Sequence record: ON529850.1
Length of the DNA stretch: 64,000 nt
Strand: one strand, 5' to 3'
Shown here: positions 4,226-47,621 of the stretch, one piece after another
How positions within the stretch are numbered: position 1 is the first letter of the stretch
Layout of the letters: each line of letters begins with the position of its first letter
The notes under the pieces: model-generated
What the model saw: the letters and a program-made list of their open reading frames with translations, nothing else
The model's database searches: none
What the model was told of the DNA's origin: nothing
Translations under genes and position numbers: made by a program

Positions 4226-4228
4226 GGC

Positions 4229-4480
4229 ATGCGGCTTCAGTTCATTCGCCTTTACGTCGAGACGCCCGCGTCGGAGCTGTCGCTCTTCAACTGCTTGAAG
4301 GCGGCCGGCGGCTACGACGGAACGATCACGCGCTATCGCGGTGGTCTCTACATCAACGCCAGGGTGTTGGGGGAGACCGTCGCCGATGCCGTCTCGGCGT
4401 TGCGGCGCGCGCTTGAGCAGAGCACCATCCCGATGGAGTTCATCGCCGACCTGACCCCGCCACGCGAAACGCCCCTTTAA
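4229..4480 (+). CDS. tandem paralog 5
   Basis: FIRLYV..LKAAGGYDG..VLGETVADAV. Confidence 0.7.
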   Translation: MRLQFIRLYVETPASELSLFNCLKAAGGYDGTITRYRGGLYINARVLGETVADAVSALRRALEQSTIPMEFIADLTPPRETPL

Positions 4481-4564
4481 GCGCTGCGCGCGGGTCCTCC
4501 CGGTCAGGGGCGGTGGTGACGCGGAGGTGTAATTCTGACATTGAATTCCGCTTTGACGTAATGC

Positions 4565-4593
4565 TTGACGTTCGGCGATGGTTCGCATATACA
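4565..4593 (+). promoter_or_regulatory. sigma70-like promoter
   Basis: TTGACG-N17-TATACA. Confidence 0.7.
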
Positions 4594-4599
4594 GATCAG

Positions 4600-4790
4600 G
4601 TCATGGGCTGCTACACGATCTCCCCTTGGGAAGTGCAAAAGAGCGGTCCTTCGATGCAGTATCTCGGGGAGAGAGACGGTTGTAAGAGCTCCCCGCCCAC
4701 CCTCTCCTTGGATGGGGGTCCACGCGTTATGCGGGATAGTCGAAAGACAAAGTGGGTATCGTGCGAGGGGCGGCTACGGCTGCCCCTTTT
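4600..4790 (+). ncRNA. candidate ~190-nt structured RNA or attenuator leader
   Basis: promoter upstream; closing helix CACGAT/ATCGTG; GTC-GAAA-GAC hairpin; terminator GGGGCGGC-TACG-GCTGCCCC-TTTT. Confidence 0.55.
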
Positions 4791-4816
4791 CGCATCCACG
4801 GGACGGACCTACCTCC

Positions 4817-5014
4817 ATGTCGACCCATTTCATGCTCCCGCTGGAAGATCGCCTTGAAACACGCGATCGCGCCGCTGCGCTCCTGGAACGGCATCGCCCC
4901 GAGATCGGCAAGCTGCTGGCGGACGTCCAGGCGTTCGCACAAGACATTCAGTGCGCCCTGGCGGACATCCCGAACGACCGGCTGCGGAATATCGCCTTGT
5001 GTTGCGATCGTTGA
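4817..5014 (+). CDS. hypothetical protein
   Basis: 65-aa helical ORF; weak SD. Confidence 0.6.
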   Translation: MSTHFMLPLEDRLETRDRAAALLERHRPEIGKLLADVQAFAQDIQCALADIPNDRLRNIALCCDR

Positions 5015-5045
5015 CAACTGACGTGGATTGCGTCATCAACGCCGC

Positions 5046-5228
5046 ATGACCTACAAGCAGAAACTTCTCGTTAGCGCCCTGCTCTATCTTACGGCCGCCG
5101 GCCTGTTCGGCAGCGGCCTCGGCTACACGTTCGCCAACGGAGAGGATCGCATCAGCCTGGCGATTCTGATCGCCGCCCTGGGGGTGCTGCTGACCGCGCG
5201 TCATCTGCGTCTGCGGTGGAAGCTGTGA
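5046..5228 (+). CDS. small membrane protein
   Basis: two hydrophobic segments; coupled. Confidence 0.75.
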   Translation: MTYKQKLLVSALLYLTAAGLFGSGLGYTFANGEDRISLAILIAALGVLLTARHLRLRWKL

Positions 5229-5407
5229 AGACGAAGACCGACAAGATCATCATCTGCACCGCCCTCTTCCTGGGACTTTCCGGCGTTATTATGGGCGCGG
5301 TTGACCTGGCGCGGACCGGCGACGTGAGTTGGCAAGCTCTGGTGATTCAGTTCAGCTGGCTCGCCGTCCTGGTCGGCTACAGTCTGATTCGATTGAAGCG
5401 CGCGTGA
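5225..5407 (+). CDS. small membrane protein
   Basis: GTGA overlap; two TM segments. Confidence 0.75.
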   Translation: MKTKTDKIIICTALFLGLSGVIMGAVDLARTGDVSWQALVIQFSWLAVLVGYSLIRLKRA

Positions 5408-5867: not shown

Positions 5868-6070
5868 TGGCGACCGCTCTCGTCGACACCGCCTTCACCT
5901 TCCTCTGCGTCGCCCTGGGGGCGGTCACAGTTTTGATTTTCCTGCACCGGGCGAATCGGGGTGGGGTCAGCAACCGCGCCGTCCTGTGGTCGGTCTCTCT
6001 GGGTTGCACCGCCATTGGCGCCATCTATTTCATCGGCGCTATGGTCGTGCTGTGGCAGGGGCTCCCCTGA
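5867..6070 (+). CDS. small membrane protein
   Basis: TGATG overlap; two TM segments. Confidence 0.75.
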   Translation: MATALVDTAFTFLCVALGAVTVLIFLHRANRGGVSNRAVLWSVSLGCTAIGAIYFIGAMVVLWQGLP

Positions 6071-17382: not shown

Positions 17383-17880
17383 ATGGCTATTGAAACCGAA
17401 CGACGCTTTCTTCTGACCGCCGCGCCGCCGCAGAGCGAGCTTCGCTCCGCCACAGTGCACCGGATCGACCAACGCTACCTCCACAATACAGGTGGATGGG
17501 CGATGCGAACACGCAAGACCACCTACCCGAACGGGTCCGTCTACCGACAGCTGACGCTGAAGCGACCGACCGGTGAAGTTGGATCGGCCGTCGAAATCGA
17601 GACGGTGATCAAGCCGGAGGTCTATGAAGAGCTGATCGCGGAAGCGGGGCTGCCGATCATCAAGAATCGGTTCCGCATCTCCAAGGGACCGCACACCTGG
17701 GAAGTCGATCAGTTCCTGAACAAGGACCTGGCCCCGTTGTGGATCGCCGAAGTCGAAGTGCGTTTTATGGCGGATCAGTTCGTCATCCCCGCGTGGGTGA
17801 ACGGCCCGGAAATCACGGGCGATCACCTTTATTCCAACGTCAACCTGGCGGCCCGGCTGACCACCGACGCGGTGATCTAA
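17383..17880 (+). CDS. CYTH domain protein
   Basis: IETERRF; IDQRYL; LTLK; EIE; WEVDQF; IAEVE; EITGD..YSN..L. Confidence 0.9.
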   Translation: MAIETERRFLLTAAPPQSELRSATVHRIDQRYLHNTGGWAMRTRKTTYPNGSVYRQLTLKRPTGEVGSAVEIETVIKPEVYEELIAEAGLPIIKNRFRISKGPHTWEVDQFLNKDLAPLWIAEVEVRFMADQFVIPAWVNGPEITGDHLYSNVNLAARLTTDAVI

Positions 17881-18970: not shown

Positions 18971-19157
18971 GAGTGATGCGCTCCATGAGTTCGAGGGATT
19001 GGGATCGCCCGAGGCGTCGGTGGCGGATGATTTCCACCGCCTCCACGTCCAGGACGATGGACAGGATGCGCTCCGCGCGATCCATGGCGGCGTCCAGGGT
19101 CGCGGCCGGCTCGCCGCGCTGGCGTTTGCCCTTCACGATGGTGTGGGTCTTGATCAC
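18963..19157 (-). CDS. hypothetical protein
   Basis: GTGA overlap with upstream stop. Confidence 0.65.
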   Translation of the reverse strand: MIKTHTIVKGKRQRGEPAATLDAAMDRAERILSIVLDVEAVEIIRHRRLGRSQSLELMERITRD

Positions 19158-19939
19158 GCCGCCTCGCCGTCGAGATAGACGTCGCGCGACTTCAGGATCG
19201 GCAGGGCGCCGCCCATGACGAACTCCGTGCGGTTGGCGACCCGATGGAGCGGCGGCATGTCGTCGACCACCATGACGGCGCGCGACATGACCGAGGGATT
19301 GCCGGCCCGAGGCATGGCGCCCCAACGCAGGTAGGTCCCCTGGCGGAACGACGCCGGATAGGCGTCGAAGTCCACGCCGCGCTCGGCGATCAAGTCCAGC
19401 ATCTGATCGCGGGTCTTGCGCTGCATTTCCTTGTGCGAGGCGACCGAACGGCACGCCATGGAGACGGCGTTGCGCTGGGCGTCCAGAGCGCGCCACAGGA
19501 TCATGTTGGCGGCCTCGTGGTCGTGCGGCAGCTGCAACACGCGGGCGTCGAACGCCGGCAGTCGGTCCTCAAAGGGAGCCCAGCCGCGAATCGCCTGCGC
19601 CATCTTCGCCGCCGCCATCGACGCCAGAACGCTGGTCAGCTTCTGGACCTTGCCCTCGAACATCACGCTGGAGGTGTGGTCTTCCGCCTTCCAGACCAGG
19701 CTGATTTCGTCGGATTGGGTGTAGGCGAAGCGTGCGCCGGTCTCGCGCATCAGGTGTTTCGCCACCGCGATCATGGCGTCGGTGAGCCTCTGATCGAACG
19801 GACGATCCATGCCTTTGGTGAACTTCGAGAACCCTTTGCCGTCGATCCTGGCGTAGATCGGCAGCGTCTGGAACAGGCGGTGATCGGTTTCACGGCGCTC
19901 ATACGCCTTCATCCGGTCGCCCAGGTCATCCTTCGACAT
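19154..19939 (-). CDS. thg1: tRNA(His) guanylyltransferase Thg1-like protein (3'-5' polymerase)
   Basis: DRMKAYE; ARIDGKGFSKFT; YTQSDEISL; FDARV; WRALDAQRNAV. Confidence 0.92.
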   Translation of the reverse strand: MSKDDLGDRMKAYERRETDHRLFQTLPIYARIDGKGFSKFTKGMDRPFDQRLTDAMIAVAKHLMRETGARFAYTQSDEISLVWKAEDHTSSVMFEGKVQKLTSVLASMAAAKMAQAIRGWAPFEDRLPAFDARVLQLPHDHEAANMILWRALDAQRNAVSMACRSVASHKEMQRKTRDQMLDLIAERGVDFDAYPASFRQGTYLRWGAMPRAGNPSVMSRAVMVVDDMPPLHRVANRTEFVMGGALPILKSRDVYLDGEAA

Positions 19940-25271: not shown

Positions 25272-25299
25272 GAGCGTCCTCCGTGTTGTTCACGGGTGT

Positions 25300-25325
25300 T
25301 GTAAAGGAACGCTATCCGCTGTCAA
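25300..25325 (-). promoter_or_regulatory. boxed phage promoter
   Basis: TTGACA-N8-CGTTCCTTTACA. Confidence 0.8.
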
Positions 25326-25328
25326 CCC

Positions 25329-25795
25329 AAAATAAAGAGGCCCGAGCAGTTTCCTGATCGGGCCTCAAGGCGCCGGCGTGAACCGACGCTGCGCCTACCG
25401 TGAGGGGGATCACGGCGACGAAACCTGCTCCTGGGAGTTGAACCCGGCTTTCAGGCGACAAGCCCAAGTGACGTTGATTCGTCTCTCAGGGGGCAGACCA
25501 CGGCGAACCGTAGAAGGCGCCCCTGATAGTCGCCATACAGGTAAAATGGGCTTCCCGTATCAGGCGCTCGTAAGCCCCTGATCCGCCGACCGCGTGAAAA
25601 CGCGGCCACCGCCCCTCTCGACACTTTGCGGCGCCAGAGCCTATCCCCTGAGGGGTCCGCATGGATAGCGCGGTAGCCAGGCGACCCGCCGAAGCGCTGT
25701 CGTTACTCCCAGCCTATTCCTCTGATCTTCCCAAGCCCGTGTGCCGGCCAAGAGATCGACGAGGCCGGGAAACCCCGCCCCGTCGATGGCTCCTT
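25329..25795 (-). ncRNA. candidate large structured RNA (~450 nt)
   Basis: no minus-strand ORF in the track; at least 8 hairpins plus long-range GGGCTT/AAGCCC and GTCGCC/GGCGAC pairs; T-loop-like GGGTTCAACTCCC; ends in terminator GAGGCCCGA..TCGGGCCTC-TTTATTTT. Confidence 0.6.
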
Positions 25796-25849
25796 CTCCC
25801 ACACTTCCATCAGGGTGTCAACGGTCGTTGTGATTTTTGTCAAAAATCT

Positions 25850-25945
25850 TCAGGACGAAACCGACAGAAGAATCGGAAGCCCGACGCCGATGAACAGCGC
25901 CAGGAAAATGACGAAGGAAGTGAGAAATCTCGACAGGGTGCGCAT
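25850..25945 (-). CDS. 31-aa hydrophobic peptide
   Basis: MRTLSRFLTSFVIFLALFIGVGLPILLSVSS; TTGACG upstream; weak SD. Confidence 0.5.
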   Translation of the reverse strand: MRTLSRFLTSFVIFLALFIGVGLPILLSVSS

Positions 25946-25989
25946 ACGCCCACGCTTATCATTCGAGGGGACCGCGTCAAGGCGAATCG

Positions 25990-26085
25990 AAAAGGGCTCC
26001 CGCTTGATCAGCCGGGAGCCCTCCGAATGAGCGCGGATGCCAGCCCGCCACGACCGATGGCACGGAAGACACCCGTTTCGGCCGG
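25990..26085 (-). ncRNA. candidate ~95-nt small RNA
   Basis: TTGACG-N17-CATACT (26120..26092); hairpins; terminator GGGCTCCCG..CGGGAGCCC-TTTT. Confidence 0.6.
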
Positions 26086-26126
26086 ATGTTCAGTATGCCC
26101 TGTCGTGTTTGCCGCGTCAAGAACGC

Positions 26127-26285
26127 AAAAGCCCCCGGCGCGTGGGGCGCCGGGGGCCTGCACGCCCACCGAAGGGCGACACGGCCGTCTGTTAGGACCT
26201 ACTCCACGCGGCGGGTGTGCGCGGTTTCAATCCAGGCGCTGCTCTATAGGAGGTTACCAGCAACGGAGGTGAGCAGCACGACCGG
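26127..26285 (-). ncRNA. candidate ~160-nt small RNA with anti-SD loop
   Basis: TTGACA-N17-CATTGT (26320..26292); stem GCTGCTC/GAGCAGC whose loop holds CACCTCC and ACCTCCT; terminator 26157..26127. Confidence 0.65.
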
Positions 26286-26320
26286 ACCTCCACAATGGCA
26301 AACGCCAGGATCGCTGTCAA

Positions 26321-32536: not shown

Positions 32537-32632
32537 ACGGCTGTCAGAATTTCTGGACAGGACTGACAGAACCTGGTAAGGTCAAATCTCTTGAGACTTG
32601 AATGTTCTGTTTAACCTGCGCGGAGAGTTTCC

Positions 32633-32716
32633 ATGAAGGCCAACACCACCGTGATCGGTGATCCGGGCACGACCTGCATTGAAGGGTGGCCCGCCAAGGG
32701 CACCACCTCGATCTAG
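32633..32716 (+). CDS. 27-aa peptide with triple TTxI repeat
   Basis: SD GGAGAG; MKANTTVIGDPGTTCIEGWPAKGTTSI; own terminator. Confidence 0.55.
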   Translation: MKANTTVIGDPGTTCIEGWPAKGTTSI

Positions 32717-32740
32717 TATCGGACCCAGAGCTGATTTTTA

Positions 32741-32770
32741 GACCCGCGTCGGACCACCGGCGCGGGTTTT
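32741..32770 (+). terminator. intrinsic terminator
   Basis: ACCCGCG..CGCGGGT-TTT. Confidence 0.7.
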
Positions 32771-32862
32771 GCTTTGAGAGGCGTTCGATGCTATGCTTCC
32801 GGCATGCTGAAAATCAGACGCAGGATGATCGCTTAGGCACCTCGGTTCCGGGGTGCTTTACT

Positions 32863-32937
32863 GCGCCCTGGGTGTGATGGACAGCACAACCGTCTTCTAA
32901 ACGGCAAGACCAGGTTCGATCCCTGGAGGGCGCGCCA
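32863..32937 (+). tRNA. tRNA-Arg(UCU)
   Basis: acceptor GCGCCCT/AGGGCGC, anticodon loop CT-TCT-AA, T-arm CCAGG-TTCGATC-CCTGG, encoded CCA. Confidence 0.95.
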
Positions 32938-32941
32938 CCTA

Positions 32942-33005
32942 TCACTCGCTTGCGCTTCGCGCGGCGCTCGTGCCCGGCTTCGCCGGCCGCACCTTCGGTC
33001 GGACC
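32942..33005 (+). repeat. tri-hairpin dispersed repeat, copy 7
   Basis: starts 4 bp after tRNA CCA; loops TTC/TTC/TTC. Confidence 0.9.
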
Positions 33006-33138
33006 CCATGGAGGGACGGCCGAGACGACGTCTCGATCGGTTTAGAGAACCGACGAACTGTCAAGTTTAACTTGACAATTCCGACGATAGTTAAACCGCG
33101 ATAATTTGTGCTTGACCGTCGCATTTCGTTCCTATACA

Positions 33139-33325
33139 TCACCCCTCGTCGCGGCGCCTCCCGCCCCTCCTGACGACGACGGTAAGACGGACCCAGGGGT
33201 GATTTGGAAGGAGGCATCGTAGCGATGAAGGGGTGAGCGGCTGACGCCGAGCGCCCTGCCCGCCGGATTGCCGGCATGAAGGCGGGCTAGTCGATGCGTT
33301 TGGGTTCGACCCCCTGCCGTGACTC
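33139..33325 (+). ncRNA. candidate structured RNA / leader (anti-SD hairpin, 3-way junction, T-loop-like hairpin)
   Basis: TCACCCCT/AGGGGTGA enclosing CCTCCC..CCTCCT loop; GCATCG/CGATGC junction; GGGTTCGACCC. Confidence 0.5.
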
Positions 33326-33348
33326 CAACATTTCAGAAAGGACGCCCG

Positions 33349-47265: not shown

Positions 47266-47404
47266 GAGTTCTCCAGGGGAAAAGCTCCCGCCGCCGGCGG
47301 TGATTCCAGCGAACCCTTGCGGATGAAGCGGCGCAGCCGGGGGGCGCGCGCCTGACTTCGCGGGAGGTCCTGACGGACGAACCACCCTGCCACATTCAGA
47401 ACAA

Positions 47405-47516
47405 TAACAAAAGCCCCGGCGAACGCCAGGGCTTGAGAAATAAGGCCCCGCTCCGGAGCGGGGCCTCGGGTGCTTCAGAAAGGCGTTCCAAACCTTGTAA
47501 TAGCCTAACTTCTGAC
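47405..47516 (-). ncRNA. candidate ~110-nt small RNA
   Basis: TTGCAT-N16-TATAAT (47550..47523); TCAGAA/TTCTGA hairpin; two terminator hairpins. Confidence 0.55.
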
Positions 47517-47558
47517 CCCGCCATTATAGTCGAAAGGCGGGGAAATGCAAGAATCCTG

Positions 47559-47621
47559 TCACAAGGAGACAAGCGTGATGACAAAGACGAACAGGAACAC
47601 CCTGACTGCCAGGCGAATCAT
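47559..47621 (-). CDS. 20-aa hydrophobic peptide
   Basis: MIRLAVRVFLFVFVITLVSL; ATGA overlap with upstream stop. Confidence 0.55.
   Translation of the reverse strand: MIRLAVRVFLFVFVITLVSL

Follow-up and report, generated by a model that had tools for sequence, protein, structure and literature searches.

Large structured RNAs without known function are rare, and each new class of them has yielded new RNA biology. Several, such as GOLLD and ROOL, are phage-derived. In the transfer RNA (tRNA) gene region of phage T4, the small stable RNAs C and D, to which no function is assigned, are co-transcribed with the tRNAs and released by processing. In this study we analyzed a stretch of 64,000 nucleotides (nt), hereafter the window, which is identical in sequence to bases 1-64000 of the 321.5-kilobase (kb) genome of Brevundimonas phage vB_BpoS-Gurke (ON529850.1), a member of the Dolichocephalovirinae with B. 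pondensis LVF1 as host. The subject is an island of ~1 kb on its minus strand (25329-26320), which is likely a real locus of non-coding RNAs (ncRNAs) together with a micropeptide gene. It is probably a compact early locus, from which the housekeeping RNA polymerase of the host would read two small RNAs (RNA1 and RNA2), a membrane peptide and a large structured RNA (RNA4) from four closely spaced promoters.

GOLLD and ROOL are large ornate RNAs of phages and prophages with conserved and variable domains and no assigned function (PMC12286853). RNA4 resembles them in being large (455 to ~600 nt), heavily structured and phage-encoded, in combining a conserved with a variable part, and in having no known protein partner; it too occurs in genomes rich in tRNA genes. 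However, it is smaller, belongs to phages of alphaproteobacterial hosts and matches neither Rfam model, with no match in the island even at E<=10 and none for the RNA4 homologues. Nor is it located beside a tRNA array, the only tRNA gene of the window being 7 kb away. Judged from sequence and predicted fold alone, RNA4 appears nearest in kind to GOLLD and ROOL, and it is predicted to be a new family of this known kind, a large structured phage RNA matching no described RNA family.

The cuckoo/alpha-r14-type small RNAs (sRNAs) of Alphaproteobacteria carry CCUCCUCCC in their hairpin loops (PMC4615179). RNA1 shares with them C/U-rich loop motifs resembling anti-Shine-Dalgarno (anti-SD) sequences, a Rho-independent terminator and a place in a cluster of small RNA genes. 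Cuckoo RNAs have two to four adjacent hairpins, each with the 9-mer, whereas in RNA1 two shorter motifs (ACCUCC and ACCUCCUAU) share a single loop of 26 nt; RNA1 also lacks the 9-mer, is phage-encoded and has no Rfam match. Small RNAs, mostly without assigned function, have also been described in the transcriptomes of the jumbo phages PA5oct, phiKZ and 201phi2-1 (PMC7318152, PMC8244752, PMC11512511). These RNAs of Pseudomonas jumbo phages are likewise non-coding and lie within giant phage genomes, but they were found by RNA sequencing and have no sequence relation to the Gurke island, which is known from comparative evidence alone. The island is like the region of RNAs C and D in being a dedicated cluster of RNA genes encoding small phage RNAs; it differs in that its units have their own promoter and terminator and that tRNA genes are absent. 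The first-pass annotation of the window had described it as arranged like a tRNA cluster, which is only an analogy.

Layout, conservation and coding potential of the island

The island is flanked by GURKE_00610 (26321-26722) and GURKE_00590 (24828-25271), two minus-strand genes without assigned function, and is surrounded by a long series of small hypothetical genes. Read from the minus strand, it contains four promoter-like sites, three strong terminators composed of a hairpin and a U-tract, and no long conserved open reading frame (ORF). The units follow each other in the order RNA1, RNA2, 31-codon ORF and RNA4 (Table 1). The motif TTGAC[AG] occurs six times on the minus strand of the island, against 44 times in the 64 kb (~0.7 per kb). 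No paralogues of the island were found across the window. The first-pass annotation had described a minus-strand array of promoter, RNA and terminator units with an ORF of 31 amino acids (aa), in which the first two units possess TTGAC-N17-CAT promoters and end in GC hairpins with four U. These signals were read as TTGACA/CATTGT and TTGACG/CATACT, and the layout is kept in relatives.

Table 1. Positions of the features of the island in the window.
Feature	Position	Strand	Description
Promoter-like site P1	26292..26320	-	TTGACA, 17-nt spacer, CATTGT; -35 box abuts the GURKE_00610 stop codon
RNA1 (putative, ~160 nt)	26127..26287	-	Outer helix, 7-bp stem with 26-nt loop, two small hairpins, terminator
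RNA1 apical loop	26245..26270	-	Two ACCUCC motifs, anti-SD-like, unpaired in the consensus fold
Terminator T1	26127..26159	-	13-bp GC stem, UUUU; relatives keep the stem, loop differs
Promoter-like site P2	26092..26120	-	TTGACG, 17 nt, CATACT
RNA2 (putative, ~96 nt)	25990..26085	-	One long interrupted hairpin and terminator hairpin
RNA2 terminator hairpin	25992-26023	-	10-bp stem and UUUU, end at 25990
Promoter-like site P3	25952..25980	-	TTGACG, 17 nt, AAGCGT; then ATG at 25945
31-codon ORF	25850..25945	-	Small hydrophobic peptide, single transmembrane segment; open in all lineages
RNA4 promoter region	25793..25850	-	A/T-rich upstream stretch, TTGACA (25816-25821), 17-nt spacer, GAGAAG (25793-25798)
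RNA4 (putative, ~455 nt, structured)	25330..25786	-	From 5' hairpin to T4
RNA4 5' hairpin	25754..25787	-	In all lineages, sequences differ; 6 pairs with compensatory changes
RNA4 conserved core	25614..25753	-	Closing helix P1, then four-helix junction; invariant unpaired stretches (e.g. AAGAUCAGAGGAA in Gurke)
T-loop-like hairpin, RNA4 3' domain	25430..25448	-	6-bp stem, 7-nt loop UUCAACU
Terminator T4	25330..25366	-	13-bp stem, U-rich tail; one compensatory pair
GURKE_00600 (GenBank CDS, 203 aa)	25661..26272	+	Antisense to the island RNAs; unannotated in Kikimora

The phage Kikimora (ON529857) is 95.3% identical to Gurke over the island, and the flanking genes are 74-97% identical. A protein search through the neighbouring gene detected a homologue of GURKE_00590, 75% identical, on 15 Logan/ENA contigs. 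In the metagenomic relative thus found, homologues of the same two genes enclose a gap of 1038 nt with no called gene and 74% nucleotide identity to the island. All three RNAs are present in this gap, together with the 31-codon ORF in unchanged length and frame. Each of the three terminators is present there with another loop. So are all four -35 boxes, one of them with one base changed, and the hexamers keep their distance from the boxes while the spacers are largely rewritten. At P1, the -35 box is identical, the second hexamer differs in one base and the spacer is diverged. At the position of P2 the relative has another -10-like element, such as the protein genes of the phage use, and this exchange at the same position suggests turnover under selection for promoter function. 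At P3, the spacing between the -35 box, the hexamer and the ATG is the same in Gurke, Kikimora and the metagenomic relative, with different spacer letters.

IMG/VR contained no relatives when searched with the flanking proteins, and an exact 19-mer of the RNA4 core gave four chance matches only, on low-GC contigs, in viral, genome and metagenome collections. RNA1 and RNA2 alone, compared by blastn with 50,697 phage records, matched Gurke, Kikimora and chance terminator-like sequences only.

Among all ORFs of at least 25 aa on both strands, the 31-codon ORF alone has neither stops nor frame-shifting indels across Kikimora and the metagenomic variants. The alternative that the region codes for protein, through the antisense GURKE_00600 or another ORF, could point to this 203-aa plus-strand coding sequence (CDS) in GenBank and to several ORFs of 40-70 aa in the Gurke island. 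However, all of these ORFs are interrupted in relatives. The stretch of GURKE_00600 shows frame-shifting indels followed by three in-frame stops in Kikimora and four in the metagenomic relative. It matches nothing in protein family libraries, and substitutions in the region track base-pairing rather than codon periodicity. Coding outside the peptide can thus practically be dismissed. Since it is interrupted in both relatives, unannotated in Kikimora and without a family, GURKE_00600 is probably a spurious CDS call. The annotation of giant phages can hide RNA genes beneath spurious calls of this sort, and comparative data from raw-read assemblies can recover them. The only match of the island's neighbours to protein families was that of GURKE_00610 to a PHROG without assigned function.

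The RNAs belong to no described family either. In the window, Rfam 15 at gathering threshold returned only a tRNA-Arg at 32863; in the island at E<=10 no family was reached, the best being SdsR_RyeB (21.6 bits vs a threshold of 38, E 0.49). The RNA4 homologues of Kabachok and five metagenomic loci gave nothing in Rfam at E<=1. ARAGORN called a single tRNA in the window, outside the island, and none in L003, and the Rfam models of tRNA and transfer-messenger RNA (tmRNA), including the two-piece alphaproteobacterial tmRNA, had no match in the island. RNA-RNA pairing among the island products did not rise above background. The first-pass annotation is therefore borne out where it spoke of non-tRNA RNAs, which are neither tRNA, tmRNA nor members of an Rfam family. 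Its proposal of a dedicated non-coding locus with a small membrane-peptide gene is supported by the ORF survey, the conserved hexamers and the compensatory changes. It had named an absence of structural covariation in relatives as evidence to the contrary, and compensatory changes were found in RNA1, RNA2 and RNA4. The role in host takeover or anti-defence that it put forward is speculation, and the molecular targets considered below are putative.

The large structured RNA

RNA4 is the most widely conserved element of the island. With its 5' part (25614-25758), blastn found matches of 85% identity in five other giant Brevundimonas phages, namely Kabachok, Domovoi, Papperlapapp, Bambus and Marchewka, where they fall in intergenic sequence without annotation. 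In this Kabachok clade, a 240-aa gene and a CYTH-domain gene are transcribed divergently from the RNA4 homologue, which is followed by an unrelated gene of 72 aa. A search for homologues of the 240-aa gene yielded six further metagenomic loci, and all six have the RNA4 core at the corresponding position (82-88% identity). The 5' half is thus represented by 15 sequences (14 distinct) from at least six lineages and two gene neighbourhoods, and RNA4 was seen in at least 16 public samples and seven isolates. None of the 15 homologues, in either gene context, departs from the two promoter hexamers or from their 17-nt spacing, and the A/T-rich stretch upstream of the -35 box is also similar among the homologues. 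The fourth region had been described as hairpin-rich and ending in a strong terminator, which holds. It had also been left without a promoter, which does not hold: a strongly conserved one of its own is present.

The fold of RNA4 has a z score of -4.3 against dinucleotide shuffles. The elements of the 5' half are the 5' hairpin, a short CGGC/GCCG helix, UCAGAG/CUCUGA, a two-part P3 with a UUCG-type loop, P4 and P5. In the 5' hairpin and core, 46 pairs were counted with 99.5% of cells paired; ten of the pairs show compensatory and six one-sided changes. Controls in which the partners were slid by one or two columns gave 0-2 compensatory pairs and 34-45% pairing. For closing helix P1, four lineages have four sequences with no relation to each other, and in each of them the strands are complementary, either perfectly or with wobble pairs. 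In Gurke-type sequences, 153 predicted pairs are 98% paired, with 13 compensatory and 14 one-sided changes. Most of the covariation events separate a few clades. The invariant bases are mostly located in the junction strands. Across clades, entire hairpins are inserted or deleted, and the length varies from ~455 to ~600 nt.

Covarying helices, invariant bases in the junctions and peripheral hairpins that come and go suggest that RNA4 acts through its three-dimensional fold. If RNA4 is functional, we hold it somewhat likelier that it works in this way than as an antisense RNA. With a multi-helix junction core and a variable 3' domain, it could serve as a protein scaffold or sponge, form a self-assembling particle, or be a ribozyme. 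A bolder proposal, which we regard as unlikely, is that RNA4 is the first of a new class of large ornate phage RNAs (ribozyme, self-assembling particle or scaffold of an RNA-protein machine) needed early by giant alphaproteobacterial phages, with RNA1, RNA2 and the peptide as lineage-specific accessories of an RNA-based takeover programme. RNA4 is a clean candidate for study: its promoter is invariant, its junction core carries many compensatory changes, it occurs in two contexts, and host and phages are cultured.

The 3' domain contains a T-loop-like hairpin, the loop of which has the form UUCRAnn in Kikimora and the metagenomic relative; similar hairpins are present in the L024 and L027 sequences. 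This conserved hairpin bears on the alternative that the RNAs serve as decoys against host defence, either as tRNA-like mimics that titrate anticodon nucleases or through imitation of CRISPR or ToxI-type repeats. The position of the island among probable early genes would agree with such decoys, as would the heavy investment of the phage in tRNA biology, with 29 tRNAs and a Thg1-family enzyme 6 kb off. On the other hand, ARAGORN and the Rfam tRNA and tmRNA models are negative in the island, no direct or tandem repeats of the ToxI-like or CRISPR-mimic kind were found in it, and no defence context is known for the host. We consider decoys quite improbable.

A number of more specific models of RNA4 were tried and rejected. 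Core helix P2 was first modelled as GGGCUUG with UAGGCUC, a pairing that was given up because only one of its strands is changed in the L024 lineage. An alternative P2, UCAGAG with CUCUGA, fits all sequences; it is invariant and hence without covariation support. A pseudoknot between the P4 loop and GGAAUAG is broken by two changes in the L024 lineage. The T-loop-like hairpin, together with the CCA-like 3' end of the Kabachok homologue, had suggested a tmRNA-like or tRNA-like RNA4, but ARAGORN was negative and the CCA context is not conserved, the CCA-like stretch being split by an insertion in Bambus and Marchewka. In the metagenomic variant L018 (~5915-5925), the loop of T4 is changed from GGAAAC to its reverse complement with the stem unchanged, which is a hairpin-loop flip.

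The two small RNAs and the membrane peptide

RNA1 has a fold z score of -2.5 against dinucleotide shuffles. Its consensus fold from four sequences has 37 pairs with 99% of cells paired, two compensatory and six one-sided changes. Variable columns make up 40/91 of the unpaired positions (44%) and 12/74 of the paired ones (16%). In Gurke and Kikimora the loop contains ACCUCC twice, and none of the three lineages has lost the second loop motif, CCUCCUAU. Estimated post hoc, a loop as large as this would contain two CCUCC by chance with a probability of ~5e-4. Alphaproteobacterial sRNAs are known to mimic the anti-SD sequence through CCUCC-type motifs in their loops (PMC4615179). The likeliest mode of action for RNA1 would be pairing of its loop with the Shine-Dalgarno regions of host or phage messenger RNAs (mRNAs), by which the initiation of translation would be blocked. 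Such a Shine-Dalgarno-masking regulator is a possible but tentative assignment for RNA1.

RNA2 is 100% identical in Kikimora, with no changes in 100 nt. Its fold z score is -2.8 by the same comparison, and among its 27 pairs one change is compensatory and one is one-sided. The stem is invariant at many positions where covariation would be permissible, which points to constraint on the sequence itself. As this constraint goes beyond structural need, RNA2 is probably bound by a protein or paired with a target.

The 31-codon ORF is predicted to encode a single-pass membrane peptide. The peptides of the metagenomic relative and Gurke share the N-terminus and a GLP motif and have matching grand averages of hydropathy (1.64 vs 1.68). 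Synonymous and conservative changes are frequent, and the ratio of non-synonymous to synonymous substitution rates (dN/dS) is ~0.55 vs 0.27 for GURKE_00590. No family was matched in Pfam, PHROGs or NCBIfam. In every lineage the ATG follows the P3 hexamer by ~6-7 nt, a distance so short that the peptide mRNA probably lacks a leader. Leaderless transcripts are a common feature of Caulobacter.

A hydrophobic peptide of ~30 aa encoded directly beside small RNA genes recalls type I toxin-antitoxin modules, in which the peptide would be the membrane toxin and a neighbouring small RNA its antisense regulator. Its size and hydrophobicity are typical of type I toxins. However, all units are on one strand and no antisense relation was found: the sigma-70 scan found no antisense promoter, and the duplex energies of RNA1 and RNA2 with the peptide mRNA were no better than those of shuffled sequences in Gurke and the relative (z -0.2 to +1.5). 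No toxin or defence family was matched in NCBIfam, Pfam or PHROGs. A toxin-antitoxin module is highly improbable, and the peptide is better read as one product of the proposed RNA and micropeptide locus.

Probable transcription of the island and other features of the window

A recurrent promoter precedes protein genes of the phage. One instance is located at 25298-25325 on the minus strand (TTGACA, 16 nt, TACAAC after a conserved T-rich stretch), and at least ten further sites of the window have the same -35 box and T-rich -10 region. It agrees with the housekeeping promoter of Caulobacter. The recurrence of a host-type promoter in the region suggests that the island region is probably transcribed early by host RNA polymerase. 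The transcription start sites, including that of P3, and the timing are those we infer from these signals. Sites of the recurrent promoter were found near 8109-, 9876+, 12587-, 17328-, 35224+, 41062-, 45754-, 46579-, 52122- and 63551-, and the leaders behind it are often alike, with GGAGG as a strong ribosome-binding site. The second hexamers of the island RNA units differ from that of this promoter, and they are weak by E. coli standards.

Several observations weigh against the island as a locus of independent RNA and peptide units. Under strict rules, a generic sigma-70 scan accepted P2 as the sole promoter and failed the other three of the four; a strict terminator scan accepted one island terminator. 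The second hexamer of RNA4, GAGAAG, is atypical and lacks the usual final T. The independence of the units, as first proposed, needs correction for RNA1, which is not separated from GURKE_00610 by a terminator, and for the 31-codon ORF, which has no terminator of its own and the transcript of which must therefore read into RNA4. For RNA1 and RNA2, the phylogenetic depth is three lineages with few compensatory events, and the pairs were counted on the very alignments that had served to predict the structures. In the metagenomic relative, the first ACCUCC of the RNA1 loop is replaced by another C/U-rich string, and a duplex search with this loop within the window found no specific target above background. 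The dN/dS of the peptide indicates mild constraint only. The Gurke genome paper reports CDS and tRNA calls only and does not mention ncRNAs (PMC10070969); the phage has 29 tRNAs, and ARAGORN found no tmRNA there (PMC10070969).

Without a terminator upstream, RNA1 could also be produced as the 3' end or 3' untranslated region (UTR) of the upstream operon, and it may be merely such a UTR. In a broader form of this alternative, the RNAs are cis-acting UTRs, with RNA1 as the 3' UTR and terminator of the GURKE_00610 operon and RNA4 as a long leader of riboswitch or attenuator type that would govern read-through to the downstream gene. It gains from the Kabachok clade, where the hairpin that closes the RNA4 homologue has an interrupted U-tract and lies only 17 nt ahead of the 72-aa gene, with a promoterless gap between them. 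However, every unit is preceded by a conserved -35 box and hexamer of its own, and in Gurke-type phages a strong separate promoter follows T4. The genes downstream of RNA4 are unrelated between the two contexts. The ~300 nt of variable hairpins between the core and the terminator are unlike known riboswitch expression platforms, and no cis-regulatory family of Rfam was matched. Cis-acting UTRs therefore appear improbable as an account of the RNAs, and separate RNA genes are preferred.

Another RNA unit, 'X', of ~195 nt was found at 4565-4792 (+) in the unannotated gap 4226-4816. It consists of TTGACG, 15 nt, CATATA, a structured RNA and a GC hairpin with UUUU, and has no match in Rfam. A core of ~40 nt is common to X and a ~250-nt unit in the five Kabachok-clade phages; the latter unit converges on the 72-aa gene and lies a short way downstream of the RNA4 homologue. 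A duplex of RNA4 with X through shared GGGGUCC and GGAUAG stretches was considered and rejected, as X changes in Bambus and Marchewka while RNA4 is not changed to match. The same gap contains an 83-aa ORF (4229-4481, +), unannotated in Gurke, where tag 00080 is skipped; it matches the position of KIKIMORA_00080 and is unrelated to the 72-aa gene beside the Kabachok RNA4. In Kikimora (4990-5245; L013 ~800-1050), X is followed by an extra TTGACG-promoted unit ending in a hairpin and U-tract, which is absent there in Gurke.

A Thg1-family gene (tRNA-His guanylyltransferase-like; 19154-19939, -; Pfam E 1e-30) and an annotated inorganic triphosphatase gene (17503-17880, +) are located 6-8 kb from the island. 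The Gurke copy of the triphosphatase has no Pfam match and the Kabachok copy matches CYTH; in the Kabachok clade, the RNA4 homologue adjoins the CYTH operon. Together with the 29 tRNA genes, the two enzymes suggest a heavy investment in RNA-end biochemistry. Other stretches of 350-800 nt without an annotated gene are 1287-1924, 2144-2669, 32537-33348 and 47266-47617. One gene-free stretch holds the tRNA-Arg and divergent TTGACA boxes at 33064 and 33072.

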